Shown here one piece after another: positions 2,554 to 64,000 of a stretch of DNA of 64,000 nucleotides. The stretch is from Lepidodermella squamata (lineage: Eukaryota; Animalia; Gastrotricha): NCBI GenBank assembly GCA_047495785.1, contig JBLDXI010000033.1:930001-994000 (forward strand). The letters run 5' to 3'. The notes under the pieces were generated by a model. The model ran no database searches. It was not told where the DNA came from and saw only the letters and a list, made by a program, of their open reading frames with translations. A program made the position numbers and the translations under genes. Positions within the stretch are counted from its first letter, which is position 1. The number at the start of each line of letters is the position of its first letter.

Positions 2554-2679
2554 CAAAAACCCCGTGCAATAGTAGAAAACCGAGTGCATTTCCCGGTGAT
2601 CAAAAGTTACTTTGTTAGTATCTCGACAAGAAAAATAAATAGTTATGGAGAGATAATTCTTGTTTTATTGAAATACCAG

Positions 2680-7400: not shown

Positions 7401-10400
7401 TTTTCCAGAACTCGCCAACAGTCGACCCGCTGGGACCCTGGGACGCAACGTACTCGCGCTCGCCACTCGCGCCCTTGATGTAACTCGCATTGACGTAAAT
7501 CGGCTCTTTCGCGTTCATCTCATCGTCCAACAGCACGCAGTTGAAATCGTAAGGAAACACGTCCTTGTAGCGATTCCTCGCCGCGTTCAACTTCGACTTG
7601 CCGATATCTTGAGTTTTGTCAAGTTTCCTCAACAGCGACGCGAATTCCTTACGAAACAACGCGTTATCATCCGCCTTTCGGTCAACAATCGCCTGTTTCA
7701 GCCGATCGACACGGACCGCGGTACAGGCAGAAGTTCCATTAATAGCACTACCAGCTGATTGTAATGCCGGGCTGGGCCAGGCGTTAGGGTTTGAAATATT
7801 CGCAATCTGACTTGATTGCAAAGTCTCGCAAATCGAACCGGCCTTACTGCGTAAAGTTCCGTCCCTCGGCTGCTGCTCCAGGTCGAACTGCCCGGTTGTA
7901 GACGTCGGTGTCGAGTCAGTGGGCGGGGTGTTGAAACCAGCCAGGCCGATGCCCTGGTTCGGGACTTGAGTTTGACTGCTGCAAAACGCGGCTACGTCAG
8001 GTAAAAGACGGCCGTTAATTGAAACGGTGCCGTTATGATTCGATGTGAAGTGCGATTGGGTCGACTGATGGAGGGAATTTTGCTTGATGAAGTAATCTTG
8101 GGGGCCCAGGGCGGCAACGTGATCGGAAGCTCCGCTCGATGGCGAGATGTTAAACCGGCTGACTTTGTTGCGCGAAAATAGCTTCTTTTTCCTGAAAAAA
8201 TTAGAACATGAGCATATTATTTTGATCGTAAAAATATGAGAAAAAAATAAATTCCACCTTAACAATTCTAAATGACAATTTTTCCTGCTCATAGTTCTTT
8301 CTTGAAATTTTATTCCCCGTAAACCGACTAGAATTTTTTCAAACAGAATGTCTTTCAGCGGAACCAAGTTACAAAACTTGGCACCAAACGCAAACTAATA
8401 AAAAAGGCCATTTCCGAATAATTTTTATAGATCGCGTGGTCTGAAAATTGCGGAGAATTTCAATGGTGAAAAGGATTTTTGACGCATGAACGTTTCAGAA
8501 AATTCAGAAAAGGCAATTTTGGGCGAATAAATTCTTTTAAATTTAAATTCCGCTCCCGGTCAAATTCGGTTCCGCAACAGTCAATTTTTTTCCGGTTGCG
8601 ATGTTCATCAGGGAAGAAATTAAAAACAAAGAAAATTCGAAATTTTCATAGATTTTCAGCAGCAACTATTGCGGAGAAATCAAAGGAAAATTGCTATAAT
8701 AGTTTTTATCCGTTTTTTTGCAAAATTGCGAAGGAATGATCTCAAGAAACTGGACACTATAGGAACCCTAATACTGAATTTTTGAAATTTTTTAAAAAAC
8801 GTTGTATTTTTCTGTCCTTGAAATTTGATAAGATTTAACTCACTTCATGAGTAAAATGCAAAGAACAGCCAACGCGCTCGCCACGCAACCGCAACCAACA
8901 ACAATGCCGATAATCATTGTCTGAGTCGGGGTGACCTTCCCATCGCCAGCTTTCGCATTCGCCTCACTGACCATGTTCGCACTCGTGGTCGTCGTCGTCA
9001 TTGGAGGTGTCGAAGTCGGCTGCGATTTCGGCGAAGTCGACGAGGAAGATCTCGTTGATGCCGGATGGGTCTCAATCACCTTATCCGTCCAAGATGGAGA
9101 TGTAGCCGACGAAAATTCGGGGGTGATAATCAAAGGAGATGAAGTCACTTGTTGAGTTGAAGACGACCTAGCGATGACTGGGGTAGGACGGCCTGTGCTC
9201 TGGGGTGGGCCGATTACGTAGACCTCAGCCGGTTCTGACCAGTCACTAGTCAGACCCCTCGTATTTATAACCCGGGCTTTCACTAAAGCCAACTTCGAAT
9301 TGGTCATCCAGGACGATAAATCGTTAACGCCAAAATCGTAAGTTCGAGCTAGGACATTCGTGATATTAAGGACCATTTGAACTTGAAGGTTAGAAACAAC
9401 AAGTTGAGTAAGAGCTAATGGGCAGTTTGAGTCGATTTCCAACTCCCATTGAATCGTTATCGACATTTTCGATTGGCGAATAACCGTCATATTGAAAGGC
9501 GCGGAGGGTACTGAAAATAAATAAAAAATAGTTAAAAAATTAAATTTCATAAAATTATTAAAATTTATTAATTTTTTAAATTTTATAAATTATTGAAAAA
9601 ATTGAAAAAATTACCGTTGCAAGTCGTTGTAACAGTCAAAGTTTCTGAGCGGTACATTTCCTCAACCTGCGGGCCTTCACTCATAGCCATAACGGCGAAG
9701 TATTGCTGGTTATTTGGTTTCAAATTCGAGATCACAGTTGAGCATTCCATCTCAGACGCGCCCCTTAGGCACGAAGAATTCGTCTCGACCAGCAAAAATT
9801 TGATCAAATTTTCGCCATTCACCTGCTCGCTCGACGACGGCATTCGAGCCGAGTAGAGCCAATAAGCCACCTTAAAGCTGGTCGGAAATTCAGCGGGCGA
9901 CGGCTCGACGGTCCAGTGAAGCGTGACGGTTGTAGCTGTTGTATCTTTCACGCTGATTTTCAACGGAATTCCAGTCCAAATTGAGTTGTAAACTGCATCG
10001 CCCTCTTCACGCTCGGTGTTCTTGTACCAAACAGCTATTGTGTAGTTTGAATCTGCTCGAATGTCGCTGAGCTCAACACTCCGCCGCCTGCCAGACATCG
10101 AAATTTGCTTATCAGGGATGGCTTGATTCAACTCGTAATAGGAAAGTAGGAACTCGCCGGGTTCCGGGCAGTCGGCCGAGCGGATTGGCGGCTCGAATGA
10201 AACTTGAATTTCCGGAACGCCCCGGCGCCATTTTATCACCGACGTCAGGGTAGCGATAGGGCCTGGTTTGCCACATAGGGTGACCAATGGGTTGATGGAC
10301 CAACTTATCGTGCCGTTATCGCCGCCTGGCTCAGGCCGAACTGGGATTATTCCGACCAGGTAATGCGACTGGGCGTCTAAATCGCGGAGTCGGAACTGGC

Positions 10401-41496: not shown

Positions 41497-43051
41497 ATGT
41501 CCCTCGCTGCGATTTTTCCTGTCTTCTTGCAGACACTTCTGATGATTGCGGCCAATGCTGACCCGGCGAGTGTCAATCTGAATGCAGTGTTGTTAGCAAA
41601 GGATTTGACAGATAGGTACAACAAAACAATTATTCCTGCATCGACTTGCGCCGACCCAACAGCGAATTTCTGCCCGTTCAGAGTTGTTTGTCGGCTATTC
41701 CTTATTCGAATTCAGGATATAGTCGAGAGCTCTGAATCGCTCATCACAACCGTACGGGTCCAGTTAGGCTGGGTAGATCCTGGAATGCGTTGGAATCCGG
41801 CTGATTATGGAGGGGTCAACTCGATAACGTTACCAGGCGATGCGTTATGGAAGCCGGATTTGCAGTTTGTTAACAGCATTGAGGATATGTACACGCTGTT
41901 TTCGCAAGACAGTTTCGGATTCAGAGTCACAAATGACGGGCAAGTATGGTGGCACCCAACTGGCAAGGTCCAGACGCGTTGTGCTATCGATCTTTCGTAC
42001 TACCCATTCGACTACCAGTGAGCTTTAAGTGACTCAGAATTGTATCATAGCAAAAATTCAATTTTCAGACGCTGCGTCATTATAGTCGAGTCTGTCATCA
42101 ATACGGCTGGAGAAATGATGCTTGATTTGCGATCTGATAAAACCGACCATGTTTCCCTTCAGCTTTTTGCAAGAAACGAAATGTGGTCTCTGATTGGTAA
42201 GCTATTAGCAAAATCAATTCAGAGCCTAATGATTCCTTTTCCTTAATATATAGACAGTACAGCTGCTCCAACATTGTACAGATCGTCCAAAAACACCTAC
42301 TTCAGCCGAATTCAATTTTGGCTAACTATAAAACGTGACTCAGAGTACTATCAGCAAACAATCTTGATCCCAGTCGCTCTTCTTTCGATGCTTCAAGCTG
42401 TGACGTACCTAATACCGATAAAATTTGTCGACCGGACACCGCAAGCAACAGTGGTCTTGCTTACGACGTTTTTCCTTCAAAGTTAGCCGCCAGTTTCATT
42501 AATTTTTCATTGATTTTCACAAAATTTCAGGCTACATTTCTGACCGCATGCCGAGGTCGTCGAAGCAGTCTCTAGTCCTGACCTATTTGAACATTTTGAT
42601 CGGAGTTTCAGTTGCTACCATCATGATTTGCGTGATAACATTGCAGGCTATCGACCCCGATGATGGGCTCGAATGGTGGGGCATTGTAAGAATGCGGTAA
42701 GAAACGTTTCAAGGCATTTTACTTTCCCTAGAGTGCTCCTTCTATAGATACCGTTTGATACAAAAAGTCAACAGAAGGAGAGGTCGGCCGAAGACCGTGA
42801 GAGTCTCGCCAGCTCAATCATCAACTAGCTCGGATATTGACTTGAAGGATAAAACCAATAGTGCTGAAATGGCACCGTTGCCAAAAGCTGCGCTTGCTGC
42901 CGCCCTGCTAAACTTGATCGGCTTCGTCGTCAGCATGCTGATAGCAATCATCTATCCGTTGGTAGCTTTCGTCTTGTACATGCAGCCCATTCCACAACCC
43001 ATGCCGCATTCAGCCGCGAATTATTCGGTGACTTACTACGCTGATCCATAA
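41497..43051 (+). CDS. Divergent Cys-loop channel subunit L3
   Basis: WNPADYGG, LWKPDL, Cys-loop CAIDLSYYPFDYQRC, M2 DRTPQATVVLLTTFF, tail NYSVTYYADP. Confidence 0.92.
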
Positions 43052-43488
43052 CCCGCAATCCATACTTCTCGGTTTCGGCCGCCGGTTGGCATTAAAATGA
43101 AACTGTGAACTGTGATGACGTTGTAGCCATCCCTAATAAAGCGTTATGATCGAGAAAAGTTGCAAGATGAACCATGATGACGATGGACCCCCTCCTTCCA
43201 CCTGCATTCCAATAGAATACTTGATTCACTCAACACCCAACATTCCTTCCTTTTTTATTCGAAAAAATGGGCGCAAATCCTTGAAAATGTGATTTAAATA
43301 CTATGGAGTATTGAATCTTTAACCCTTTATACTAGAAATAAGCTTCGGCGTGTAACACCTGTGCCTGGGCGAGATTCTATGAGCTGTCAATCAACTTGTT
43401 TTCTCTTCATTTGATTCGTTGCTTGGTGCTCGGTGCTCGCAGCCAGCACTAGCATTATTTGATTCATTTTAGCGAAAAAGTAACAGGG

Positions 43489-45330
43489 ATGGGAATAATT
43501 GCACCAGCGCTTTTACTCACTTTGGCTGTCTTACCTTCGGGCGACTGTGGACCAGTCGAATACCACCAGAAGCAAGCTGACTTGCGCAGCATGTTGTTCA
43601 AAGATTACAATAGGAACATTCTACCTGCCTCAAATTGCAGTGACCCGAATGCAGTGACGTGTCCTTTCGTCATTCAGGCTCGACTCTTTCTCGTCCGCAT
43701 TCATGATTTGGTGGAGGACAAAGAGGCTCTCGATGCAACTGTTCGACTTCAACTCGTGAGTTTTCGACTAAAAAATTAGCGTTCGTTGTTAATCAGTATG
43801 CATAGTCTTGGTATGACCCAGCTTTGACATGGAATCCCAGCAACTATATGAACATTGACTCGATATTCTTGCCACCGAGAACAATTTGGGAGCCAGACCT
43901 TCACGTATATCCTTTAATTTTAAAATGAGATAATTTGACAATCATGCTTATCGATTTTTGTTAAGATTGCGAACAGCGTTGATCTGGCACTTTTCTTTGA
44001 ATACGGCTACTTCGGTTACAGAGTGACTCATCAAGGGTATGCAATTATTGCCTTATAGGATATTTCTCGATTCTTTCATTCCAGGCAAGTCTTCTGGAAT
44101 ATCACCGCAAAGGTTCTAACACGATGTCCACTGGTAAGGATTTTCAATGGAGAAGTCTCACTGCTAAAAAGTCTTTCTTATTAGGATCTTGGCGACTATC
44201 CTTTCGACTATCAGTGAGCTTTCAACTTCGAGTAGATATAAAAAGTCCCCTGTCTATATTAAGGCTCTGTGCAATCATTGTTGAATCCCCATTCCACACA
44301 TCCGACGAGCTGTATCTTACGATTCCGTCTAAAGCCGAACTCGCGTTTTCTAAAAACATGCTGGCGCAAAATGACCGATGGCGCTTATCAGGTTATCAAT
44401 AGTTTTAATATTTTCAAATTACAACTGTTTGTTATACTACCCTTCAGCCTCTACGGCTTTTCCTATCTTCTACAAAACGGGCGAGACGTTGTACAGCCGC
44501 ATTCACTTCTGGATCACGATCGATCGCGATTCGGGCTACTACCAACAATGCTTTCTAATCCCAATCGCATTGCTATCAGTCATTCAAACGATGACCTACC
44601 TAGTACCAATGCATTTTTCGGATAGAGTAGGCCAGTCAACTGTGGTCCTTCTTACAGCGTTTCTTCTCGAGGGTATTACATTCACTTAAAAGTTAGCCGT
44701 TTTACGTCTTGTAATAGGTTACATCTCCGACCGCTTGCCAAAGTCATCGCAACAGTCCCTAGTTCAGACATACCTGAACATCCTGATTGGAATTTCTGTA
44801 GTCGCGAATGGTCTCTGCATCCTGACTGTCGAAATGTTAGACCCAGATCCTGCCTTGGAATGGTGGGGAATTCCTACCCTTCAGTAAATTCTCTCATTTT
44901 TCGAATATAAATGTTACCTATGGCCATTTCTGTTTTCAGTAAGATCGTTACGCGGAATTTTCAGTTTGGCAGGAGGCAATCAGTCTCGCCAACTCCAGAT
45001 TGTCCTAACAGCACGCTGTCTGTTAAGTCAGTCAGTAGCCGAAGTTCGAAATCATCGCGATCTTCACGTTCCTCGCACTCGTCAGGCAGCAGCCACGTCT
45101 CTAATGAAACGTCAGCTACAGAAATCATGGAAGGCGAAAAATTCCAGGCATTGATTTTCCCAGCCGCCATTCTCAACTTTCTAGGCTTCGCTGGCTCGTT
45201 GCTGCTAGTAATTATCTACCCGATCGCTGTTTTCATCGGATCGATAGCCTCACAGCCGCCCCCGCTGCCGAGACCACCAGCCGATAACATTACGTATTCC
45301 TACTACGCAGAGGGAACGTTTCGCATTTGA
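43489..45330 (+). CDS. Divergent Cys-loop channel subunit L4 (about 8 introns)
   Basis: WNPSNY, IWEPDL, spliced Cys-loop CPLDLGDYPFDYQLC, M2 DRVGQSTVVLLTAF, tail NITYSYYAEG. Confidence 0.9.
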
Positions 45331-45434
45331 AAGAAAATAATCCATAATTTAAAAGTTAATTTCTCCATTAAATAAGCTTTAATTGAAATTTCAAAATAAA
45401 TAAACGCTCTATGACATGTGGTTATAGATGAAAT

Positions 45435-47027
45435 TCAAAATTCAGCGTAATATGAGGTTGAGACGTTCCCTTCAGGAGCTCGAGGCATTTCAGGTGGTGG
45501 CATATCACCGAGACCGTAAAACGCGAAAAACGGGTAACCAAAAGACAGGCTAACGCTAGCAACAAAGCCGATCCAGTTGATAATAGCTGCGATTATAGCT
45601 GTTTTCCTAACTTGGGCAATGCTAGGCGATGGAGAAGAGGATGCAATCTCATCTTCAGTTTTGTCGGCAGATACTTTCTGAGTTTTACGAAGGCAACATT
45701 TCAGCAAAGGTACGAAGCCCCATATTTGCAAGCCTTCGTCCGGATCGACGAGTTCGATTGTTAGGATGCAGAAAGCGACTGTAACGACTGATAGAGCGAT
45801 TGTAAGGTTAAGATAGGTTTGGACTAGCGAATCGCCAGACGATCTTGGTAACTGATCTGATAGGTAGCCTTGGAGGAAAAACGCGGTCAGGAGGACTACT
45901 GTAGCTTGAGGTACTCGATCGATGTACTTGATTGGCATCAAATAGGTTAGAATCTTCAATTATAAAAATTAAGAAGAAACTTTCTCCAATTTGAGAGTTT
46001 CATGAACTTACTTGCAGAATTGAAAGAAGCATCAATGGGACCAAAAATGAGCGTTGGTAAAAATCTGTAAATTAGGCGAATTTTAATTTCATGGGCAAAA
46101 TGTCCTAAATACCTGGTTTTCTCTTCATTGTAATCCAGAAATGAATACGACTGAAGCCGGTATTTTTGCCTGTTTTGTAAACTGTGCTGTATCCACTCGT
46201 ATCTGTTCGAAAGATTCATGCAATAATGTTTCCGGGAATTTTGAAAAATTTATAGCGTCCAACCTATCAAAGTCCACATGGGGTTTTCCGAGTACATTCC
46301 AAGTGATATGGCTTCAGGCTTATCCGAGCGAATAATGAGCTGCAACTCTCGCGTTGTGTACATCAAAGACTCGACCACTAGAGAGCATCTCCTGAAAAAG
46401 AAGTTCGGAATTCAATTCAATCTCAATTTCGGAACTAACTGGTAGTCGAAGGGATAGTAAGTGAGTTGGAGAGAGCACCGAGTTGAGAACCGCCCAGTTG
46501 GATGAAACCACACGCGGCCATCGTTCATGACTCGAAACATGAAGGGCCCCTCGTTTAACACCTCCATCGCATCGTCGACGCTGTTGGCCATTTGTAAATG
46601 CGGCTTCCATATCGAATCAGGCGGGAAAGTTATGTCCTTAATTCCACCGTAATCGGCTGGATTCCAGGTGAGAGCCGGGTCATACCAACTCTATTAAAGT
46701 ATTTTTGAGAAAATAATTATGAGCTTGAGTAATTACCAGCTGGAGACGTAATGTTGACACGAGAGTTTCAGAATTTTCAACGATTTCCTGAATTCGAATC
46801 GGGTATAGCCGAGATTGGACGATGAAGGGACATTTGGCTTTTGAAGTATCATTCGCCTCTCGGCATCGGCCGGGTCGGGGTAATACACTGCGATTATACG
46901 CACTAGCCGGGCCAATCAATTGATGAATCAGCAGAGCCGAATATTCGTGATCAAGGTCGTCATTTGAAGCAAAGGACTCGCGATGAGAGATAATAGTAAA
47001 AATTAAGGTGGCTAAAGTTGCGCGCAT
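45435..47027 (-). CDS. Divergent Cys-loop channel subunit L5
   Basis: WNPADYGG, Cys-loop CSLQLTYYPFDYQRC, M2 DRVPQATVVLLTAFF, tail NVSTSYYAEF. Confidence 0.92.
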
Positions 47028-47302
47028 TTTTTCGCACACGAGTTAATTTTTTTACATTATTGTATTAGAAAACTGGTATAGTTGATATTTTATAACCATG
47101 GTGTGTACCAAATAATAGCTTGAATGTTTATGTAAACATTGAGTAATTTTTAGGCTGTAGGCGCATCGATCATTAGCACGCGATTTTATAACTTATACGT
47201 ATAACCAAAACAAGTCGTAAAAAACGGACGCAAACATCCATCCGACCACCGACTGTGTGATGCGCGTAAATCATTTTAAACGCGGGCGATCATCAAACAT
47301 CA

Positions 47303-49043
47303 TCAGTGCTCGGCATAGTACGACTCGGATATATTATCGTGCCGCGGCGCCGGAATTTTCGGCGGCTCCTGGTAGTGCATCTCGATAAAAACTGCGATCG
47401 GGTATAGGAATGAGAGGAAAGTAGCCGCTGAAAAGCCGATCAAGTTCAACGTGGCCGCGATGATCGTCGACGTCTTCAGGCCACTTCCTTGCCGACCTTT
47501 CACGCGCTTGATTGACAGGTTATTTTTTAACGACCGCCGAAGTTGAAGACTCTCCTCCAGGTCGACAACTGCCTCGGATGAGTGGCGCCGCCATTGTTCG
47601 ATCTGGCGTTGGGTGTTACGCCGAACATGCTGCTGCGCTAGACGGGCTCGGTTTTTTCGGCGGTCGTAGTAGTGTAGGATGCCCCATAGAGGTAGCCCTT
47701 CATCCGGGTCAACGAGCTCGGTTGTTGTGATGCAAATTAATACGGTTATGACGGAGGAGCCGAGCATGAGGTTGACGTAGGTTTGGAGTAAGGATTCGCT
47801 TGAACTACGCGGCAATTGACTGGCGAGCTGGCCTTGGAAGAAAAACGCTGTCAGCAATACAACAGTAGCTTGAGGGACCTATTTAAAATTAAAATTAATC
47901 AAAAATAAATTCAGAAATTTTCATACTCGATCTATGAATTTCAGCGGTATTAGGAAGGTTAGGACTTGAAGGACGGACAGCAAGAGCAAAGGAGTTAGGT
48001 AAGTTCTTTGAAAATAATCTGAAAAAAAATAAAATAATTCGCAAATAAATTCCTACTTAAAAGCGGACCTGATTTCCTTTTAAGTATAAAGAAAAATTCA
48101 ACGCGGCCGAAACTAGTCCTCCTGCCTGTTTTATATATCGCGGAAAATCCATCGGCATCTATATGGGGTATGTCTGATTCATCGGAAATCAGCCTTCAGC
48201 ATTCAGTCCTTACCTATTAGTGACCACATAGGATTTTCGGCGTACATTCCTAGCGCGACTGGGTCAGGCTTATCTGAACGAAGGTTGATCAACATTTCAC
48301 TGGCCTTGTAAGTCACAGATTCGAAGACTATCGAGCATCTCCTGATTTTCGGGAAAAATCGTAATTTTTCACTTAATTTACGAAAATTCCTTACTGATAG
48401 TCAAACGGGTAATATTTAAGGTCGAGTAGGCACCGAGTTGCGTATTTGCCGCTCGGGTGATACCAAACCCGGCCGTCATGGGTGACTCGATACCGGAAAT
48501 CGTCGTGATGGATGACGTTGTTCTTATCCTCAACGCTGTTAGCTACGTGAAGGTCGGGCGACCAAATCTGTTGAGGCGGCAAGATGACCTCATCGACCCC
48601 GCCGTAATCCGCCGGGTTCCAGGTTAGAGCAGGGTCATTCCAACTCTGAATAAAAATCGATTTTTACAAGCTTTTCGAACACTATAAAAAATTACCAATT
48701 GAAGTCGGATGGTTGTCACCATGGTTTCGTCATTTTCTACAACTTCTTGAATCCGAATGAGGTAGAGTCGGCAGAACACTCGAAATGGACAGCTTTGACT
48801 GCTGCTAATAGTCGACTCTCGGTCCATGACGTTACCCGGTCCATCTGGGCATAAAGCAGCTGGCATCAGGGTTTTGTTGTAGCCACTGTTTTTCCCAACC
48901 AGATGCTCCACGAGATTGGCCTCCATTCTCGATTTCTGCAGCAGAATTTCTCTGCGCTGTTTTTCGGGTGATTCGGCGGCGCCATGCAGACCGAAAACAT
49001 TGGTAGAAAAAATGCAGAGAACGAGTAAAGATTTGCAGGTCAT
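47303..49043 (-). CDS. Divergent Cys-loop channel subunit L6
   Basis: IWSPDLHVANS, Cys-loop CLLDLKYYPFDYQRC, ELVDPDEGLPLWG, tail NISESYYAEH. Confidence 0.92.
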
Positions 49044-50353
49044 ATTTTTTAGTACATTGTTCTTCTAACAGCTTCTAAATATAACCTCGCAGCTGATGTC
49101 CGCTGATCACATATTATGCTATAAGTTATTTTTCTCATTATCGAGCCTGAAATGCAGGATTTCCTGCCACCTCAGTGATCACAGCCGCGTGTACTGATCG
49201 ACTGATGAATAAATAATTAGTGGCACTGCTTGATATCACCAGCGAGGCCGCCAAATTGAGAGAGGCGTTCACGCTGTCTCGATTTTTATTGTCTGAAGTG
49301 CTAGCGCAAAATGATGTGACACCCTTCGCAAAGCCAGTTTTAGGCCCATGCTGTCAAATATCTAATGCGACGATAGAATTTGAAAAAAATGCAGACACTG
49401 AAAGCATCTGCGTTTTCTTTAATTTTCAATAGCCCACATTCTAAATTTAGGGTTAATTTCGTTTAATTTAGCGAAGCAATAAAATTAGCGCTGAATTTCC
49501 TCAAATAAAGGTTTTTTCAATTTAACACCATCCCTGGAATCAGAGTAATTTTATGGTTTGGCAATGTTCATTCTATTGAGTTTCCCTTCTGGAGAGTCGA
49601 TATCGATTCCTTTATCGATTTTAGAAATCAGTGATTTTTCCTATCTCAAATTTATCGGCAACCACTACAGCGAGAGTCCCAGAATTTGCGCAACTATTTT
49701 TTAATTTGGCAGCTTTTTTTTAGGAAATTCAGCTGACTTTATTAAATTAACAATTAAACCTACCGAGAGAATATTCCATCGCTTATCCGCGATTTAACCG
49801 AAGAAATAAATAAAACCAGGGAACCCCGATGGTAACGAGTTCGGTAATTTTCGGTATTTTACCAGATTGGGCCAAATTTCTCCGGACTTTTTCTTTACCA
49901 TTAACAACGGACATACTACATACTTGATATTTTTTGAATTTTTCTAACAATTTTCTAGCCATGAGATATGACTTCATCTCTCATTTTAGACTTTCCAAAC
50001 CCTTCCTTATCAGTGTATTTTCTTTGCTTGCTTTACTTATGGAACACGCCGTACGCTGTATTGAAAAATGTTTAACATACCTAAGGAGGTGGAAAAGGGA
50101 AAATTAAAAAACCCCGTGCTGGCAGGGGAAATTATTATCAATCGTGAAATTTGTTGATGAAACTCAAACTTTTGCGGAATTAAAAAAATTAATTTTTCAT
50201 TGAGCCAAGAAAATCTAAGATTTGAATTAATATTATTCATAACTCTTTTCATAACCTCTTTTACTGTTGATTGGAAAATTATTCATAAATTGTGGAAAAA
50301 ATCAAAAAATTAACTGTAAAGATGTAAAATTCTATTTTTATTTCTCGGTAAAA

Positions 50354-52044
50354 TTATTCAGGATAGTAAGACGATGACAGATTTCCATGCCCAGGGTTGC
50401 GAATCGATGGCGGTTGAACGGAACAAAAGTCCAAGAATGACATAAACGGGTATGAAACTGAGGTGATTATCACAATTAAAAATCCCAGCCAATTCAATGT
50501 GTTAGCCGCGATAGTGGTTGCTTTGATGTGATACCGCACACCGTCCGGCGATTCATAGCTGATGCATGAAAATCTCGAAACAACAGGCGTTGGCACGGGG
50601 TCGACAGCGATTGATTTGCGCTTATCGCCTTTCCGTCTGACATTGGATTGAAAGGAAATTTTGTGCCGCTCATAAAAACTGTGAAGAGCCCCCCATAACG
50701 GCAGACCTTCGTCTGGATCGACCAGCTCAATGGCGAGGATACAGATTGAAACTGTGATCACGGACATGGTTATCATGACATTGATGTAGTCTTGGAGGAG
50801 AGAATCTTCCGAACTTCGAGGTAGCCGAGCTGAAAGCTGACCCTTGAAGTAAAATGTCGTCATCAAGACGACAGTTGCTTGAGGAATCTTAAAAAAGGAA
50901 CGTAAGACCAATCATTTTGTTGAGAGACATTTTCTTACACGATCGATGAATTTAAGCGGCATGAAAAATGTGAGGACTTGAAGCGTGGATAGCAAAATTA
51001 GGGGAATGAAATAGGTTCGTTGAAAATAGTCTGAAAAATAATTGAAATTTTTAAAATATTTAGCGAAAATGATAAAAAACCAACCTGACTTCCGCTTCAC
51101 AATCACAACAAACTGAACTCGGCTAAATCCTGTTCGGCGACCAGTTCGGTACACTGATGAAAAACCATCGGCATCTGAAAAAAATTTGATAAAATTGAGA
51201 AAAATTTTACTTCAATTAATTTATACCAATCAACGTCCACATTGGATTTTCGGCATACATTCCGAGAGCTACGGCATCGGCTTTATCCGGCCGAATAAAT
51301 AGCAGCAATTCGTTATGTTTATAGGTCATCGACTCTAATATCAACGAGCAGCGTCTGGATGAGATACTAGAATTTTTCGAGATTTTTCAAGATTTTTCCA
51401 AGCTCACTGATAATCGAATGGGTAATATTTTAGATCGAGTTTGCAGCGCGTCTCGTATTTTTCGCTGGGGTGAAACCAAACCACCCCATCAAAGTTCACC
51501 CTGTATCGAAATTCCGCTGAAGATACGGCATTAGCATCAGCTTCGATGCTATTCGCCACGTGAAGATCGGGCGTCCAAATAGCTTGAGCTGGAATGATAA
51601 TTTCCTTCAAGCCTCCGAACTGCGCCGGGTCCCACATTAAAGCAGGATCGGTCCAGCTCTTAAGTGAATTTCGAATTTTTTAATTAAAAAAATTGAGAAA
51701 TAAAATACCAGCTGTAAGCGAACTGTTGTTACGAACGTTTCGTCATTTTCGATGATGTCCTGAATTCTGATTAAATAAAGCCGGCAGTTGACGAAAAACG
51801 GACAGGAATTTGGCTTAACAGTGTTGTCGCGAGTCAAATGCATGAATGGTATGGTATTTGGGCAGAACGTAAGTGGCAGAGTTGTCTTGTCGTAGCCGCT
51901 TTTCGGCCCGATCAGGAAATCGAGAAGTTCCGCTTCGAAATGACCTCTTGTTGGAGTGCTGTTGTTATTACCTGATTTTATCTGAGAACTGGCTATTCCA
52001 AAATCAGCATAAATCATCAGAAGTAAAATTTCTCTCAAAAACAT
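50354..52044 (-). CDS. Divergent Cys-loop channel subunit L7
   Basis: IWTPDLHVANS, Cys-loop CKLDLKYYPFDYQRC, M2 DRIPQATVVLMTTFYF, tail NLSSSYYPE. Confidence 0.92.
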
Positions 52045-52919
52045 CTGAAAAATTCGGCCGTAAAACAGGGTAACATTTAGGCTTTGCAGACGATTAGCCT
52101 TTCGGGGTTAAAAGTTGGAAATATAGGATTTTCAGCTTTAAATTCTCTGCCTATAGTCAGATTTCGTTCATCGTCAAACTCGGTCCAATTTGAGCATAAA
52201 AAGATTTGTAGACAAATTCACAATTTACTTGAAATTTGATCCTCTATGATATCTTTCAAATAATCATGGATTTAGTATTTTTTATCAAGATAAATAAATA
52301 AAATTAAAATTAATAAATATTTTTGAAAAAATTCGGCATGGGTACTACCTTACCTTCTGAAAACGCTATAACATTTAATAAGACCGTTACCGGGTTTGCT
52401 AGGGATGATATCGGGTAGTAGGGCAATGTCCCTATTAAGCACAATTTCAGGGACATCTCATTAGACTCACAATGGCAATTAAATATGCAAATGAGCGCCC
52501 AAAAATGAGAAATGGAAAAGCCTTCGTGAAATAGAAAAACTTTCCTATATAGGAACAGTAGGAATTACTTGAGTTTCGAATTTCCGAATCTGTTGAGCTA
52601 ACAGCAAACGCTGGCTTTTAGCTTTTATATAGTATATTGTTGTGTCCTAGGTTACCCTTCGTTAAGGCAAATTGTTCACCTTAAACAGCGTAAACTCCAG
52701 CTCAAAAGCTCTTATCTGCCAATTGCTAATAATTTCTGAGGTGGCAATAGCTATATGTAGCTATAAATATGATATCAATTTACAAAATCAGCATTGGTCT
52801 ATGCATCGTAAATCTATCGGCACTTGCAACAAACAATATTGCTTTATTCAAAGTGTTATCAGTTGTTATAACCAAACACAGACGAACAGTATAACAACGT
52901 ATGCAGGGATATCTTTTTA

Positions 52920-55370
52920 TTACGGTTGCTGCAGGTATTCTGCGTAGTACGAGTGCGACTCGCCTCCCAGCACGGTAACATTCGGTATCGAAAGCGGCTC
53001 GCGCGCATTTAGGCCTATATAGGCGATCAGCGGGTAAATTACCGATATGAGAGTAGCCGTAGTGAAGCCGAACCAATTGAGGAGGGCGGCGATAATTGTC
53101 GACGTTCTCATCCGCCGGCAGTTTGCTAAGCATCTACTACTAGTACCAGGCTGGTCCTTAGTCAGTTGGGCACTTTTCGCCGATGATCGACGATGGTGAT
53201 GGTGATTAAGCAAAGCCGCACTTCGCCTACGACAGATTGGCCGCGAAGTGATAGAGCCATAGTCCTCGCAATAATCAGTTACATCAATAAATTCTTCGGC
53301 AATATCAGCTAATTCAGGTCCTCGATTTTGGTAACGCAAAAACGATTTTCGAACTAATGAACTGCGGTTTTCTGATCCGCGTCGTTTGTGAGTGTAATAA
53401 CAGACCATAAGGCCCCACAATGGCAGCCCTTCATCCGGGTCAACGAGCTCGGTTGTTGTTATGCAGATTGAGACAGTGACGACAGATAGGCCTAACATGA
53501 TGTTTAGGTAGGTTTGAAGTAGAGATTCGTTTGAGCTGCGGGGTAACTCGCTGGCTAGTTGGCCCTGGAAGAAAAACGCGGTGAGTAGGACGACAGTGGC
53601 TTGTGGCACGCGGTCGATGTACTTGAGCGGGATGAGGAATGTCAGCACTTGCAGAATTGATAGCAGTAATAACGGCACTAGATACGTCCGCTGGAAATAG
53701 TCTGCAAAAAAATAAGAGCGATTGTAATTCCGAGTCGAGCGAAGTGCCAACATTATTTCGAAAAATACCGTTTTTATAAATTTTATAAAATTCAGAAAAT
53801 TATCAATCAAACGAAAGTTCGCTTTTTCAAAGATTTAATTGAGACATTTTTATTATTATGCGATCGAATATTTTTCTTGCAATTTTCATAATTATTATTG
53901 GATGTGCCATGGGGACACCCTAACCTTGGGGGTTCCAGCACTTAATTTACTAAAAATATGGCTTTCCGAGTTTCACGAGCACCCTATTAGAATCTTAATT
54001 TTTCCTAATCGAAGGTCCCACCATTAAGCATACTTTCTGCCATGAGTGGTCTCTTCAGCTAACAGCAGAGCCGATATCGATTCCAAGTATCGGTTTTGAA
54101 AATAACTGATTTTTCCAATATCGCCAACATTGAATGCCAACTAGAATTTCAACATTGAGCATGTTTACCTAGCTGATGGCGGCTATAATTAAAAATTCCA
54201 GGTTCAGGAGGAATCAGAATCAATGAAGAGCAAAGCATTGGAAAATTTTAGTGCTTCAGTTTAGGAAGCTAAATTTTTGGGTTGAAACCCATTAGTAATT
54301 ATCGGGATATTAAAAAATATTAAAAAAAACTTTGAAATTACGTTTTCATTTTAATTTTCTCACCTGATTTACGCTTTATTATTAAAAAGAATTGAGCTCG
54401 ACTGAAGCCTGTTTTCTTGCCGGTTTTGTAAATTGCTGCAAAGCCATTTGCATCTGAAAAAGGAAGTGTAAAAATTTATTCTTCATTATATTCTTCATTA
54501 CCGATGAGTTCCCACATTGGATTTTCGGAGTACATGCCCAAGGCAACTGCATCGGATTTATCAGGTCGCATCAAAATAAGCAGTTCACTGGCTGTATAAG
54601 TCACCGATTCAACGACAATCGAGCAGCGCCTTTTACATGAGAAATAAAAAATCCAATCCTATCACCTAAATTAAAAGCTTACTGATAATCGAACGGGTAG
54701 AATTTCAAGTCGAGCAAGCATCTGGTTGCAAATTTCCCACTCGGATGAAACCAAACTCGGCCGTCGTACGAGACTCGAAAGCGAAAATCGTCATGGTGAA
54801 TGAGGTTAATTTGATCTTCAACGCTGTTTGCCACTTGAATATCAGGGTACCAGATTTGCTCAGGAGCAATGACCACCTCCTTAATTCCACCATAAAGATC
54901 AGGATTCCAGGTCAGCGCTGAATCATTCCAGCCCTTCATACAAAAATTTAAAAAAATTTAAATAATTTGGAAAATTGGAATTAAAAAATAATAAAATTAT
55001 TAATTATTAATTATTAAATAACCAGCTGAAGTCTGATTGTAGTGATGAGCGTCTCGTGATTTTCGACAATCTCCTGCACTCGAATTAAAAACAGCCGACA
55101 GTGAACCACAAAGGGACATTCATGGCCGTCCGCAAACGAGTTTCCCGGGCAATTGAAGGCTGGCATAATCGTTTTATTGTAACCACTCCTTTTGCCGACT
55201 AGGTCATTGATCAACTCGGCTTGATTCAGATGCTTCCGGAGACGGTGAGCGTTTGGCGGTCCGATGGTGTAGTCCGAGTAATAATCGTATGTTTCAAGCG
55301 AGTTTTCAACAAAAACCGTGGCAACGAGACAAAAGGCGGCTAAAATAGGCCGAAGAATTATTGAGAACAT
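52920..55370 (-). CDS. Divergent Cys-loop channel subunit L8
   Basis: IWYPDIQVANS, Cys-loop CLLDLKFYPFDYQRC, M2 DRVPQATVVLLTAFFFQ, tail SHSYYAEY. Confidence 0.92.
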
Positions 55371-57410: not shown

Positions 57411-57856
57411 TGTTGGGGCCCGAGCCCGATTTCGGCCCGTACGCGTTCGGGCCGGCCCGTATGCGACCGGGTAACTTTGCCACTCCGCGCTTGGGCCAGT
57501 CTATAACGTGCCCGTATGCGACGTTTACTGTAAATTTAACAAACCGTGATTCTTCACCGCACACGGGCCGGCCAAGGTGTCGGCCCGAGCACGGCGGAGA
57601 ACAATGACAACCAGCGCTATTGTTCAGCGCCGTACTCGGGTCGCCGGGCTTGGGCCATCCATCCTACAACCAACGCCCTACCGATAACTGTATCAAGTCC
57701 CGGCCCAAACCCGGCGGCCCGGTCTATCGAATTGACAGTAAAAGTCGCATATGGGTGTTTTGAAGTGGCCCGAGCGCGGAGCGGCAAATCAATGTTACCG
57801 TCTGCGTAAGGCCGGCCCGAACGCGTACGGGCAGAATTCGGACTCGGGCCCCAACA
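57411..57856. mobile_element. GC-rich foldback/MITE-like element with imperfect terminal inverted repeats of about 130 bp
   Basis: TGTTGGGGCCCGAG...CTCGGGCCCCAACA termini; inverted similarity continues about 130 bp inward; many GGCCCG/CGGGCC units; AAG on both flanks. Confidence 0.8.
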
Positions 57857-57905
57857 AAGGCAACACATCAAACACATAATTACTCAGAATCAAAAGGCCC
57901 TATAT

Positions 57906-57969
57906 GAAATAACACCAAAATCTATTCACATTACCATGACTAATATTCGGCATAGTAAGGAACAGTGCC
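57906..57969 (-). pseudogene. Relic copy of the last codons and 3' UTR of channel gene L9
   Basis: Matches 61549-61612; reads GTVPYYAEY* versus GTVSYYAEY* in L9. Confidence 0.8.
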
Positions 57970-58364
57970 TACAAGATCGGACTCGTAGTTTATAGTGTGA
58001 TATTTTAATGGAAAATGGAAAAAGCTGGATTCCGCTTCCTAATTCGATTACTAGGGCCGAATGCATTGACGCTGCTGTTTTCTTTCTGAGACTATGCGAT
58101 ACCATATTTTTCGTTTTTTTCCTAATTTACTTTGGAAATAAAAAATTTGAATGATGATTTCATCAATTTCGAAGACTAATAAATATTCAGTATTGTGCTT
58201 TCATAAATTATATTATTCACACCTCGTGGATAGTGCCAATTGTCCACAAGACAAGACCCCTATAACAGCGTTCAATATTATTTTATTTGAAACAATCTAT
58301 CTTCAAGCATCAGAAAAGCTCTACACTCTACAACACCCAAATTCTGTACTCTGGAAGCAAACCG

Positions 58365-58712
58365 CTATTTCAACTGATGAAGCTTGTTTAAATACTTATA
58401 GCCGCCTTCCGAATACATTCGTTTGCAATTGTAGTCGGGAAGGAACTGTTGCAACTTTGCTTTCGCAGCGTCATCGCTTCCAGCCGGGAAGACAACGTGA
58501 TAATGCGGTGGGGTAACGGATTCGCAGCATCCTTCATCATCACGATAGATATGTGCGCCATTGGAAAAGCTGTCCAGAAAGCTTATCAGCGCCTCGATTT
58601 TTCCCCAATCTCTTCCGTCGGGTTGCAAATTTGGCTCGAGTTGCCCATTCGAGTTGACACGCAGTTCATCCCCAGAGCGGCCCAACTTGATTACAAACCA
58701 GTATTCGGACAT
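58365..58712 (-). CDS. Intronless HUH-endonuclease-like small protein, copy 1 (HUH and YxxK intact)
   Basis: YWFVIKL, PPHYHVVF, YKYLNK; TATAAAAA about 80 bp upstream and AATAAA downstream; three paralogs in the window. Confidence 0.65.
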   Translation of the reverse strand: MSEYWFVIKLGRSGDELRVNSNGQLEPNLQPDGRDWGKIEALISFLDSFSNGAHIYRDDEGCCESVTPPHYHVVFPAGSDDAAKAKLQQFLPDYNCKRMYSEGGYKYLNKLHQLK

Positions 58713-59536
58713 TGTAATGCAAAATAAGATTTTTTGAATAATATTATCGACCTATAACCTTCGAATGCTGAAGCCTACCGCCATTTTGGTTATTTTTATA
58801 GGCCCACCGCCAGTAATATGAATCACAGCATATGAGATAAAGACATCCTCAAAGCCTTATCTTCTCGGTTTTTTAAAAGGTGAATACACAACCGCACGCA
58901 GCCCACGGACAAAAGATGCACAATTTGAATCATTTTGCATTGTTTTTCTGCTCGACAATGTTTAGCAACTTATCCGATGGACTGCTGCCTGGGTTCATTA
59001 TACACAATTTCGAAGCGAAAACATAAATCTTAAGTAACGAAATGACACAAATCCTGTGTCTGGGCGTGAAAACCCAGTATATTCGTATGAATTGTAACCA
59101 CGAAAATTAAGAGCAATTGTCGGATCGCTTTTATTTATTTTCGATCATTCTTTATGAATAATTGACCGGTGAATCATCATCTTTCTCCCCAAAGGCCCTC
59201 AAGAATCTGTTAGGAATCCATTTGAATTAGTTTAAAGACGATTGATGATGATTTGCCATCAACTATTTTGTCCCGAAATCTCGAGTTTTCCTTAAACAAT
59301 ACTTTCCAGGTAAAAAGTAAAAAGTAAAATAATTGATGTGCCTCATTTTTTTGATTGTGCTGAAGATGATGGCGTCAAACAACAGGGGCTAAAATTTATG
59401 ATGTGAATTTGTTTATTCATCGGCCGATTTCTGAGAGAATGATACATATCAGTTTGTAAAAAAAATCGCAGAGAAGTTAACGCATAAAAGCATGTGGACA
59501 AGCGACGTGGCCCTTACAATCTGTGGAGGCGAACTG

Positions 59537-59887
59537 CTATTTCAACTGATGAAGCTTTGCAAGGAACTCGTAGCCGCCCTCCGAACGAATTCGTTGGCAA
59601 TTGTGGCCGGGAAGGAACTGTTGCAATTTAGCTTTCGCGTCTTCATCGCTTCCAGCCGGGAAGACAACGTAATAATGTGGCCCGCGAACAGAATCACAGG
59701 ATCCTTCATCGTCAAGATAAATATGCGCGCCATCGGAAAAACTGTCCAGAAAGCTTTTCAGCGCCATGACGCGGTTCGATTCTCTGCTGCCGTCGGGTTG
59801 CAAATTCGGCTCGAGTTGCCCATTCGAGTTGACAAGCAGTTCATCCCCAGAGCGGCCCAACTTGATTGAAAACCAGTAATCAGGCAT
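59537..59887 (-). CDS. HUH-like small protein, copy 2 (HYY, YEFLAK; probably nuclease-dead)
   Basis: Clear paralog of copy 1 with an intact ORF despite many substitutions; AATAAA near 59413. Confidence 0.65.
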   Translation of the reverse strand: MPDYWFSIKLGRSGDELLVNSNGQLEPNLQPDGSRESNRVMALKSFLDSFSDGAHIYLDDEGSCDSVRGPHYYVVFPAGSDEDAKAKLQQFLPGHNCQRIRSEGGYEFLAKLHQLK

Positions 59888-60874
59888 TGTAAAGCAAAAT
59901 TAAAAAATCAGGATTCTTAGAATTAGAATCTGCGAATACTACAAGCTAGCTACCGTTCGCAGTATATTTTAAGCCCATCCGCTGGTAATAAATAAATACC
60001 TACCACCTTACATTGGGTAACAGCATTAGAATTGCGCATATCCGCTATCCGCCTTAACAAACAAACTGGGGAACGTACAAGAGTACGCTTGCAGCTGTGA
60101 ATCGATTAGATTATGGCTCATGATATATAAATATATAGGATATAGGATGTACCGCAGATTTGAACTATTCAAGTTATAAAATAGCCTTATAACAAACAAA
60201 CATACCTATAATCCAATCGCGAGAGATCGCGCGTGATTAATGGCAAATTTTATGCTTGATCATCGAAATATTAACGCATTGAATATTACTCAGAAATGAA
60301 TCAGAAAGCCAAGTATGACCAAGCAAATGCCCTGCGTGGCACCTCCGAACTCCGAAACGCAGTAGCTTCCTCAGCCGCGACGATTTATAGCCGCCAATGG
60401 ATCTTACTATAACGCACTAAATACATCGAACCTTTTTACATTGCGAATTCTAATAGAAAGCTACGAATGGCATGTAATACTTTTACCCTCATTTTATATA
60501 TTTTTACACTACATACATGATTGTTTTTACTCGTTATGAGGCTCGAGTCAACGCGCCGAGAGCGTCTATGACGGATGGTGGTACAAATAAAATCCCTTCA
60601 CATGCCAAATCTCGGACGGCTCCGTACAGATATAAACCTGTTACTCATGTCATACCATACAAATATGAATGATGATTTCATAAATATCGAAGACTGACAG
60701 TAGGGTATTATTATATTCACACCTCTTGAAAAACGCACATTGTCTCCAAGACAAACAACAGCGTTCAATAAGATTTTATTCACCTCGGAAACAGTTTACA
60801 ATCCGCACAGAATTATCAGCAAATCGCCCTCTCTACTATTTGCTCATCAAAAACTGGACTCTGCAGGCAAACCG

Positions 60875-61222
60875 CTATTTCAACTGATGAAGCTTTGCAA
60901 GAAACTCATAGCCGCCTTCCGAATACATTCGTTTGCAATTGTAGTCGGGAAGGAACTGTTGCAACTTTGCTTTCGCAGCGTCATCGCTTCCAGCCGGGAA
61001 GACAACGTGATAATGCGGTGGGGTAACGGATTCGCAGCATCCTTCATCATCACGATAGATATGTGCGCCATTGGAAAAGCTGTCCAGAAAGCTTATCAGC
61101 GCCTCGATTTTTCCCCAATCTCTTCCGTCGGGTTGCAAATTTGGCTCGAGTTGCCCATTCGAGTTGACACGCAGTTCATCCCCAGAGCGGCCCAACTTGA
61201 TTACAAACCAGTATTCGGACAT
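60875..61222 (-). CDS. HUH-like small protein, copy 3 (HYH, YEFLAK)
   Basis: Identical to copy 1 except within the last ten codons, which resemble copy 2. Confidence 0.65.
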   Translation of the reverse strand: MSEYWFVIKLGRSGDELRVNSNGQLEPNLQPDGRDWGKIEALISFLDSFSNGAHIYRDDEGCCESVTPPHYHVVFPAGSDDAAKAKLQQFLPDYNCKRMYSEGGYEFLAKLHQLK

Positions 61223-61582
61223 TGTAATGCAAAATAAGATTTTTTGAATAATATTATCGACCTATAACCTTCGAATGCTGAAGCCTACCGCCATTTTGGT
61301 TATTTTTATAGGCCCACCGCCAGTAATATGAATCACAGCATATGAGATAAAGACATCCTCAAAGCCTTATCTTCTCGGTTTTTTAAAAGGTGAATACACA
61401 ACCGCACGCAGCCCACGGACAAAAGATGCACAATTTGAATCATTTTGCATTGTTTTTCTGCTCGACAATGTTTAGCAACTTATCCGATGGACCGCTGCAT
61501 AGGTTCATTATAAATAATTTCGAAGCTGACACATTACTCTAAAGTTACGAAATGACACCAAAATTTATTCACATTATCATGG

Positions 61583-63455
61583 TTAATATTCGGCATAGTA
61601 AGAAACAGTGCCATTTTCATCAAAGGGCCGCGGAATACCCGGCGGATCTTGAGACATGAGCCCAATCCACGCAATCAGTGGATAAATAATCGATATTAAC
61701 GTCGCTGCAAGAAAACCGAACCAGTTAATTAATGCCGCAATCAAGGTACTCCGCGTCAACTTTTGAAACTTGTCCGAACTAGATCGAATCGACGCGCTGC
61801 GTTGGAAGGAATTTCGCTTCAAATAGGACGGAGTTGCTAGCGAAGCTGAATAGTTCGTATCCGATGTGCTCCTAGACGAAGAAACTGGGCTGATTGCTGC
61901 CCCAACGCTCCTACTATTAGGAGGTGGTGATTCGCCGTAGTCTTGATCGATAAATTCTTCAGCCATTTCAGCCAGAACACACACGCCATGACTACTACTG
62001 CTTCGGACATTTGTTGGGAATTTCCGTTTTGATGCTTGGGGTTTTTTGATTTTGTATCGATGCCATAACAAGCCCCAAAGCGGCAGGCCTTCATCCGGGT
62101 CGACTAGTTCGATTGTAACAATGCAGATCGAGACAGTTACGACGGAGAGTCCGAGCATTAAATTCAGGTAGGTTTGAATCAGCGACTCGTCCGAGGATCT
62201 TGGCAGCTGCTCGGCCAGCTGGCCTTGGAAGAAAAAGGCTGTTAGCAGCACGACAGTACCCTGAGGCACTCGATCGATGAATTTGATCGGCATGAGATAG
62301 GTCAACACTTGGAGTATCGATAGAAGAGTTAACGGGACGAGGAAAGTTCGCTTGAAGTAGTCAGGTTTCCTCTGTAAAACGATGAAAAACTGCATTCGGC
62401 TGAACCCAGTCCGCTTTCCAGTTCGGTAAATTGCAGGAAATCCGTCGGCACCTGAAAAAAGTATTTTTTAATTTATTCAAATTATTTTTTAATTTATTAT
62501 TATTGTAATTAATTTAAATTTTTTGAATTTTCAAAATATTTTTTTGAATTTTTTACTAACCTATCAGCGTCCACATTGGATTCTCAGCGTACATTCCTAA
62601 TGCGACGGTATCGGATTTGTCCGGCCTTTCGACGATTTCAAGCTCCGTCCATTTGTAGGTAATTGATTCAATAACAATCGAGCATCGTCTGGAAAAAATT
62701 AGTAAAAAAATTTAATTTAATTCTATAAAAAAAATAAAATAAAAAAATGAACAAAAATGAAATAATAAATTATAAAAAAAATGAAAAAAATGGATTAATG
62801 AATCTTTATATACTGGAAATCGAAGGGGTAGAATTTGAGATCGAGGCGGCATCGTGTGGCGAATTTGCCACTCGGATGGTACCAAACTTGGCCGTCATTG
62901 GTGACTCGGAATCGAAAATCGTCGTTATGGATCAAGCTAATGATGTCATCAACGCTGTTGGCTACTTGCAAATCAGGCGCCCATATCAACTCGGGCGCTA
63001 TTATAACCTCCTTAATGCCGCCAAACCGCGCAGGATCCCACCTGAGCGACGGGTCGACCCAGCCCTAAATTCGAAAAATATTTGAAAAATCAGAAAAAAT
63101 TCCAAAAATTATTAACCAATTGAAGTCGGGCGGTTGTCACTAAAGTTTCGCTGTTTTCGATGATTTCCTGTACCCGAATGAGATAAAGCCGGCATAGTAC
63201 GATGAAAGGACAGGAATGCGAATCGTTCGACCCGTTTGGACAATCTTGCTCCGGGATAATCGTTTTGTTGTAGCCACTCTCAGGACCAATGAGAGCATCT
63301 AAAAGCTTCGACTCGTGGCGGCTTTTCGGCTTCCAGTGCTTGATAAAATTCGACCCCGGCCTTTCATCAACCAGGTCACGTGTTTCGTCCTGAGCCTCAA
63401 TCACGGCAAAGGCCGAAAAAACTAGGGCAAACGTGATGAGGTAATTTCTGTTCAT
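61583..63455 (-). CDS. Divergent Cys-loop channel subunit L9
   Basis: IWAPDLQVANS, Cys-loop CRLDLKFYPFDFQRC, M2 DRVPQGTVVLLTAFFFQ, tail NGTVSYYAEY. Confidence 0.92.
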
Positions 63456-64000
63456 ATCACATGAAATTCAGGTGAAAAATCGCGCCAATAACGGCGATCT
63501 AGAACAAGTTATATTACCAACTACAATAACAAAATCGCTTTATTGCTTCTTCAATGGCTATTATTGCGTTTGTTATTTATCGTTAATGATCAAGCACCAT
63601 GAAAAGCCGGTCAAGAAACTAACTACCTGTAAGCACTTTTCTCATTTCCGCTCCTCCTTTCACCTAATTTTCACCGCTTTTCATTACACCTTATATTATA
63701 GACCATAAGGCGCTATTTTTAGATCATGATTGCCCTTCTGGGCCGGGGAAGTTGACAATTTTTGCCGAAATATTTTGTCACCAAATGTATAAATGTATTG
63801 TGGACTGCGTACAATTGCGGAAAAATCACCCTTTTTCATTTGATTGATAGTAATAAAAATCAGGTAAAGAAGGTTTTCCATGTTTTTACCACAAGCCGGG
63901 TATAAACGCATTTATGCGAAATGCCGGCGGGCTTTCACGCGCCGTCGGTTAACAACATAATATCCGCGCCTTAGATGAGATTACTCGGGCTAGTTTGTTG

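Follow-up and report, generated by a model that had tools for sequence, protein, structure and literature searches.

In the nuclease domain of RepB, the rolling-circle replication protein (Rep) of plasmid pMV158, Mn2+ is held by His39, Asp42, His55 and His57, and the nucleophile is Tyr99 on helix α3 (PMC5030251). The active-site phosphate is contacted by Lys52 and His102, while helix α2 serves as a basic recognition helix for double-stranded DNA (dsDNA) (PMC9943647). Replitrons encode Reps without a helicase, which cluster with the Reps of CRESS-DNA viruses and with pMV158-like Reps, and they are placed in plants, algae and protists (PMC10288648). Here we describe three small genes of the gastrotrich Lepidodermella squamata that lie in a stretch of 64,000 nucleotides (contig JBLDXI010000033.1, positions 930,001 to 994,000; hereafter the window). 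The explanation that we favour, with moderate confidence, is that these mini-genes belong to a rare and unnamed family of host genes, a stand-alone derivative of the Rep nuclease domain that has kept a Cys/His (probably Zn) pocket and has lost nicking by Tyr.

Gene structure and expression of the three copies

All three genes are encoded on the minus strand. An earlier note on this DNA had read them as HUH endonuclease-like genes that stand alone, without a helicase, under host-type promoters. The three open reading frames (ORFs) are present as paralogues, together with every protein motif that had been quoted from them. Copy 1 has its coding sequence (CDS) at 58365-58712 and encodes 115 amino acids with an HYH motif (H70, H72), C63, Y94, C96 and a C-terminal YKYLNK (Y107, K110). 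Copy 3 (60875-61222, 115 amino acids) equals copy 1 through codon 105, after which it has the family-typical YEFLAK (F107); the two proteins are 97% identical. Copy 2 (59537-59887, 116 amino acids) is older and more divergent, with 76% protein identity to copy 1. It has YEFLAK in common with copy 3, carries HYY where the others carry HYH, and is altered at otherwise near-invariant residues (H72Y, Y94H, Y100R). No further copy was found by TBLASTN in the window.

The transcription signals and the sequenced transcripts agree with the description of stand-alone host-type genes. A TATA box, TATAAAAA, precedes copy 1 (58800-58793, minus strand) and copy 3 (61310-61303, minus strand). The earlier note had recognised this box at a distance of about 80 nt; in both cases it lies 88 nt upstream of the ATG. 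At the homologous place copy 2 has a decayed TATA-like element, TTAAAATATA (59972-59963, minus strand). As previously noticed, AATAAA is found downstream of all three genes, on the minus strand at 58287-58282 for copy 1, at 59417-59412 for copy 2 and at 60780-60775 for copy 3, where signal and poly(A) addition site (60764) together span 60764-60780. Plus-strand ORFs overlapping the genes (e.g. 60740-61237) were also considered and rejected as antisense artefacts; homologues, the ratio of non-synonymous to synonymous substitution rates (dN/dS) and the polarity of complementary DNA (cDNA) favour the minus-strand frame.

Expression was assessed with the sequencing run X1, which was accepted as a cDNA library on account of adapters present as loose ends and coverage of gene bodies only. 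The X1 contigs are restricted to gene bodies, with a depth of zero in between. Contigs and loose ends define a copy 1 mRNA of about 500 nt at 58270-58769 on the minus strand, and since the contigs are colinear with the genome over this interval, the mRNA is unspliced. A template-switch-type adapter with a non-templated G end abuts position 58769, and the TATA box starts 31 nt upstream of this point. The 3′ end of the copy 1 mRNA lies near 58270, at the homologous position between TTGAA and CGC, and for copy 3 a T20 run before 60764 represents the poly(A) tail, 11 nt beyond AATAAA. The C-terminal codons specific to copy 1 and those specific to copy 3 were both recovered in X1 cDNA without a mismatch, while copy 2 has low depth and thin coverage. 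Comparison of copy 2 with copies 1 and 3 gave a dN/dS of 0.45-0.48, with a synonymous excess (binomial P 0.015-0.026), and similarity between copies 2 and 3 detectable by blastn ends about 15 nt or less outside the CDS. The three mini-genes are real, expressed and independent genes with unspliced, polyadenylated mRNAs.

Two further observations concern individual copies. One X1 cDNA contig ends at 58341 and is followed by A20 on the plus strand, a polarity that is wrong for a minus-strand gene; this end reflects antisense transcription or an artefact of the library. In the DNA run X2, a contig corresponding to 59530-59942 carries a copy-2-like variant with 11 differences in the CDS, seven non-synonymous and four synonymous. 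One of them is D15N, which alters a residue shared by all other members of the family. The contig represents either another allele or an additional paralogue, with constraint relaxed. Because H72, Y94 and Y100 are lost and the variant shows seven against four changes, copy 2 itself appears to be under relaxed constraint and to be drifting from the family consensus.

Relatives of the mini-proteins

A word-index search with single sequences gave no match for the mini-proteins. With phmmer, a search over 1.8 billion representatives returned four proteins of 108-127 amino acids (best E-value 1.8e-7), and profile searches added another four. The family analysed here comprises these eight relatives of 108-170 amino acids and the three window copies, 11 members in all. 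Every relative is unannotated and encoded by a single ORF without a Pfam domain or a helicase, and none exceeds 170 amino acids. Their contigs are eukaryote-like, rich in microsatellites and of 30-42% G+C, and some carry TATA boxes. On one contig from another organism (L005), the relatives P0008 (1674-2138, minus strand) and P0004 (2553-2936, plus strand) stand head to head about 400 bp apart, which shows that local duplication is a family trait elsewhere too; P0004 has TATATATA 62 nt upstream of its ATG. The source of one relative is a Sphagnum peat-moss metagenome. Scans of GTDB species genomes, IMG/VR and JGI metagenome contigs with one or two peptide patterns each revealed no relatives. 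The family is very rare in the collections scanned, and within it the window clade has a long branch. A profile search of the PDB sequences returned only BH2851 (2gfg), with an E-value of 0.26-0.42, and our search of the literature on the HYHVVF motif and on domesticated HUH proteins of eukaryotes met with no account of this mini-protein family.

Predicted fold and comparison with Rep nuclease domains

Structure prediction by AlphaFold with the alignment of all 11 sequences yielded a mean predicted local distance difference test (pLDDT) of 82.3 and a predicted template modelling score (pTM) of 0.77. The three window copies alone gave an unusable model (pLDDT 47). The predicted elements are β1 (2-8), a hairpin (16-28), α1 (36-47), β2 (54-58), β3 (70-77, with HYH), α2 (80-90), β4 (97-98) and α3 (102-109), and they follow the order β1-α1-β2-β3-α2-β4-α3 of the Rep class.

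The model was compared with 48,161 chains by an exhaustive structure aligner. Rep and origin-binding domains occupied nine of the top 16 rows, as well as the top five rows of a Foldseek re-alignment, and they aligned over 81-88 residues, as opposed to 71-77 for other structures. RepB of pMV158 took the first two rows (scores 6.9 and 6.8; 87-88 residues, 17% identity). It was followed by the Rep of duck circovirus in row 3 (6.2), PCV2 Rep in rows 5 and 6 (6.0 and 5.9), the SV40 origin-binding domain in rows 7 and 15 (5.8 and 5.5), SIRV1 ORF119 in row 11 (5.6) and a smacovirus Rep in row 16 (5.5). RepB, SIRV ORF119 and PCV2 Rep also recur among the weak Foldseek rows, together with RAYT transposase and the Rep of adeno-associated virus. 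Feature searches of the ESM Atlas gave no usable match, and its shape search returned mixed ferredoxin-like clusters, among them a phage REP_ORF2-G2P cluster (template modelling score 0.53). A HIT-like fold, which the earlier note had named as a possible outcome that would speak against its proposal, appeared in no fold search, and the Rep-like fold that it proposed holds at moderate strength.

For the comparison of sequence profiles, a Rep profile was built from the N-terminal domains of eight plasmid Reps, namely a Streptococcus agalactiae RepB that is near-identical to that of pMV158 and seven others. Three of the eight were scanned against Pfam, and all three match PF01719. Alignment of the family with these eight PF01719 Reps by hhalign gave a score of 30.0 (P 2.4e-4, probability 44%). 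In the controls, 150 column shuffles scored 11.2 ± 2.3 (maximum 20.7) and the reversed alignment scored 12.7. In the resulting register, HYHVVF is placed on HYHVLY of RepB, and the family motif G-x-x-[FY]-L is placed on rYLTH of Rep_OBD, in which the Tyr is Tyr99 of RepB. The same register was obtained by unfiltered HMMER in both directions, with 5-13 bits.

Conserved residues and a candidate metal site

The 14 positions F6, D15, L42, F45, L46, C63, H70, V73, F75, L87, F90, C96, G104 and L111 are invariant in all 11 members. Near-invariant are Y56, Y71, L91, P92 and L108, and also H72 and Y94, each of which is missing in copy 2 alone. All members except copy 2, which has H-Y-Y, carry the H70-Y-H72 motif on the predicted strand 70-77. 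Position 58 is occupied by Asp, His or Cys, all of which are residues of a metal-ligand type.

When the family is placed against RepB by order and spacing, position 58 at the end of β2 would correspond to His39, and the invariant C63 in the β2-β3 loop to Asp42. H70 and H72 correspond to His55 and His57. The counterpart of Lys52, three residues before H70, is Lys or Arg in eight members, and the counterpart of His102, position 110, is Lys in the window copies only. Position 107, the counterpart of Tyr99, is Phe in eight of the 11 members and Tyr in copy 1, P0001 and P0006. The nucleophilic Tyr of the Rep class (YxxK/H) is not a conserved feature of the family; Y-L-N-K is found in copy 1 only and is derived there. 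In none of the 11 members was the full set of RepB active-site residues found. All six members with Cys58 have Phe107, and all three with Tyr107 have Asp or His at position 58 (hypergeometric P about 0.06, with related rows), an association that should be read as a hint and not as statistics.

The surface that RepB uses to recognise dsDNA is also altered. Helix α2 of the family does not carry the Arg/Lys cluster of RepB, and the isoelectric point (pI) is 4.6-6.0 in ten of the 11 mini-proteins versus 6.3-9.7 for Rep domains. From this pattern of residues it follows that conservation is centred on the former metal pocket and not on the DNA-recognition surface or the nucleophile. Judged by the alignment, C63, H70, H72, Y94 and C96 together with position 58 look like a predicted Cys/His metal site at the place where RepB holds Mn2+.

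Proposed origin and alternative explanations

Taken together, we propose that the mini-genes are ordinary invertebrate host genes, each with a TATA promoter, no intron and a poly(A) signal, in a tandem array of variable copy number. Their fold and one block of sequence would derive from the nuclease/origin-binding domain of an HUH rolling-circle Rep, closest to the pE194/pMV158 RepB type. The metal pocket would have been kept, with H70 and H72 on β3, residue 58, C63 and the Lys or Arg at -3 from the first His. What would have been lost is the conserved Tyr nucleophile of α3, together with the basic helix for recognition, the domain for oligomerisation and any origin. The product may be a small cytosolic or nuclear protein around a Cys/His site, which probably binds Zn2+. 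Its former active-site groove might bind a ligand, possibly one that bears a phosphate, without forming a covalent Tyr-DNA link, and the protein would have no nickase activity.

Descent from a Rep nuclease domain, taken by itself, seems probable to us. Several results weigh against it. Foldseek found nothing at an E-value of 0.001 or below, and in Pfam none of the 11 members matches a Rep family even at an E-value of up to 10, the matches being noise (DUF3123, UPF0179 and others, E > 0.01). When the nine-column block K-x-x-H-Y-H-V-x-x was removed from both profiles, the hhalign score fell to 12.3, compared with a null of 10.3 ± 1.8, and no similarity to the PF01719 profile was found beyond the HUH block. 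Due to this drop, the sequence evidence comes down to one short motif, the same one that lay behind the earlier note. In addition, the family model is built on only 11 sequences, and the overlay of H70, H72, C63 and D58 on the RepB ligands is one of order and spacing, not of geometry. An alternative without descent from Rep would be a lineage-restricted metal-binding protein with a ferredoxin-like (βαββαβ) fold, similar in kind to the C-terminal domain of NikR or to ACT and CutA-type domains. In such a protein, His-x-His on a central strand and the cysteines would have arisen independently, and the likeness to RepB would be convergence on a widespread fold. The mini-proteins would then merely be an orphan family of metal-binding proteins. 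We regard this origin as unlikely, though it deserves to be taken seriously. Rep and origin-binding domains lead the fold rankings and align over more residues, and the motif match extends over nine residues, K-x-[GP]-H-Y-H-V-[VIL]-[FY], with the elements behind it also agreeing in order (helix, strand, helix with G..[YF]L).

If the Rep descent is accepted, the function may still differ from the one preferred here. The members with Tyr (copy 1, P0001 and P0006) could be working minimal HUH endonucleases that nick and covalently link single-stranded DNA (ssDNA), e.g. against ssDNA viruses or rolling-circle elements, with the Phe107 members, copies 2 and 3 among them, as binding-only partners. 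In these three of 11 members the Tyr falls on the position aligned with Tyr99 of RepB and always occurs with a hard ligand, Asp or His, at position 58. P0001 and P0006 moreover combine Lys or Arg at -3, Asp or His at 58, HYH and Tyr107, and the full YUxK form occurs in copy 1 alone, whose specific codons are present in cDNA. We nevertheless consider working nickases improbable. No member unites all active-site residues of RepB, and the mini-proteins are acidic and have no known origin-like target. The Tyr of copy 1 is derived, given that copies 2 and 3 have YEFLAK in common and most relatives have Phe, and an exchange of Tyr and Phe is to be expected of a buried aromatic residue. The claim that one copy is active and two are dead was not supported: it depends on a Tyr that does not characterise the family, with Phe107 in eight of 11 members, and in copy 1 this Tyr lies within six changed bases in four codons amid otherwise identical sequence. 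As far as the alignment can tell, the claim over-interprets a freely varying Tyr/Phe position. The accompanying suggestion of a decoy or ssDNA-binding role is weakened by the acidic predicted pI. A bolder version, to which we assign a marginally smaller chance still, would make the family an unrecognised class of minimal (about 115 amino acids) stand-alone HUH enzymes encoded by ordinary animal genes, in which Tyr members would still cut ssDNA and capture it covalently and Phe/Cys variants would be non-cutting partners, as a host system against ssDNA viruses or rolling-circle elements. Apart from the Rep-like fold, little points to the remaining proposal, in which the units would be copies of a minimal mobile element of the rolling-circle kind, as the earlier note had also considered, or fragments of an endogenous ssDNA virus. 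All three copies sit in a single tandem array, no dispersed copies were found in the window, and local tandem duplication explains the number of copies. DNA depth over them is approximately single-copy, against 7434 at a true repeat 200 bp away, and in blastn copy 2 has only the CDS in common with the others. Each copy is equipped with a host-type TATA promoter and a poly(A) site, both of which are used. There is no remnant of a helicase, the relatives are all equally short, and the peptide-pattern scans of IMG/VR found no relative. Neither a Rep joined to a helicase or to a domain for oligomerisation nor dispersed copies with defined termini were found; the proteins end after the nuclease-like domain. 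The mobile-element reading is largely refuted, and we hold it to be very remote.

History and genomic setting of the array

The genes are contained in larger duplicated units on the minus strand. Unit 1 (58143-59051), which consists of promoter, gene and 3′ flank, is 88.7% identical to unit 3 (60661-61561). The two units match without a difference between about -460 and codon 105, and their 3′ untranslated regions are far more diverged. This pattern of identity suggests that either gene conversion or a very recent (partial) duplication took place. Codons 106-109 differ at six bases within 12 nt, with AAGTATTTAAAC in copy 1 and GAGTTTCTTGCA in copy 3. Because copy 3 agrees there with copy 2 and most relatives, K106, Y107 and N109 of copy 1 are the derived residues.

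In the DNA run X2, depth over the genes is approximately single-copy. One X2 contig joins 60316 to 61550 and skips 1233 bp with copy 3, which corresponds to a haplotype without this copy. A second X2 joint leads from 61612 back to 58000. It follows from the two joints that the copy number of the array differs between haplotypes or individuals. Between copies 2 and 3, at 60480-60727, the X2 depth rises from about 40-100 to 944-7434 over an unrelated high-copy repeat (transposon fragment). This history of the array does not agree with a mobile element that proliferates.

Unit 3 lies directly downstream of an ORF of 270 amino acids (61583-62395), which in Pfam matches the transmembrane region of Cys-loop channels weakly and below the threshold (E 0.046). 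According to TBLASTN, paralogues of this ORF stand in a row at 42300-53800 and 61583-64000, with 33-75% identity to its 270 amino acids, and the mini-genes fill one gap within this array of putative Cys-loop channel genes. Downstream of copy 1, positions 57903-57969 are a 90% copy of 61546-61612, which holds the last codons of the channel ORF, its stop codon and its 3′ flank. By its sequence, this segment is a relic of a duplicated unit that formerly spanned from the end of the channel gene through the mini-gene. Just downstream of the mini-gene array there is also an inverted repeat of 47 nt (57411-57457 and 57810-57856), whose G+C-rich arms are 94% complementary and stand 352 nt apart, and which looks like a foldback insertion or one of the type of miniature inverted-repeat transposable elements.

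Comparison with known systems

The closest match to the mini-proteins is the nuclease domain of pE194/pMV158 RepB (PF01719, Rep_OBD), a type that likewise lacks a helicase. In contrast to RepB, the mini-proteins have no Pfam match, no C-terminal oligomerisation domain, no conserved Tyr and no basic α2 recognition helix. They are acidic, carry conserved Cys instead of Asp/His ligands and are encoded by a eukaryotic host gene without a replication origin. If the descent from Rep is true, an animal lineage has turned a bare nuclease head of a plasmid or virus Rep into a small, TATA-driven and tandemly duplicating host family, in which the Mn2+ ligands were swapped for cysteines and the catalytic Tyr was dropped.

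The Reps of CRESS-DNA viruses (PCV2, duck circovirus, smacovirus) differ by their fusion to a superfamily-3 helicase and still have motif I, HUH and YxxK; no sequence similarity between them and the mini-proteins was detectable. The transposases of Replitrons and Helitrons are eukaryotic HUH Rep proteins as well. Replitrons occur in multiple copies with terminal repeats and hairpins, and their proteins have a second domain and retain the catalytic Tyr; the mini-genes show none of these features. The C-terminal domain of NikR and other ferredoxin-like metal-binding domains align over 73-76 residues with 3-5% identity, and they have no counterpart of helix α3 or of the nine-residue block. As for size, the Tyr-bearing members would rank among the smallest HUH domains known, which would be relevant to bioconjugation with HUH tags.

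The origin-binding domain of SV40 large T antigen and the DNA-binding domain of papillomavirus E1 are basic dsDNA binders within large helicase proteins. As known dead derivatives of the Rep fold, they have kept DNA binding and lost the HUH histidines. In the mini-proteins, on the other hand, the histidines are among the best-conserved residues. In this respect the mini-family is the opposite of the SV40 and papillomavirus domains, and this suggests that the HUH pocket has been put to a new use.

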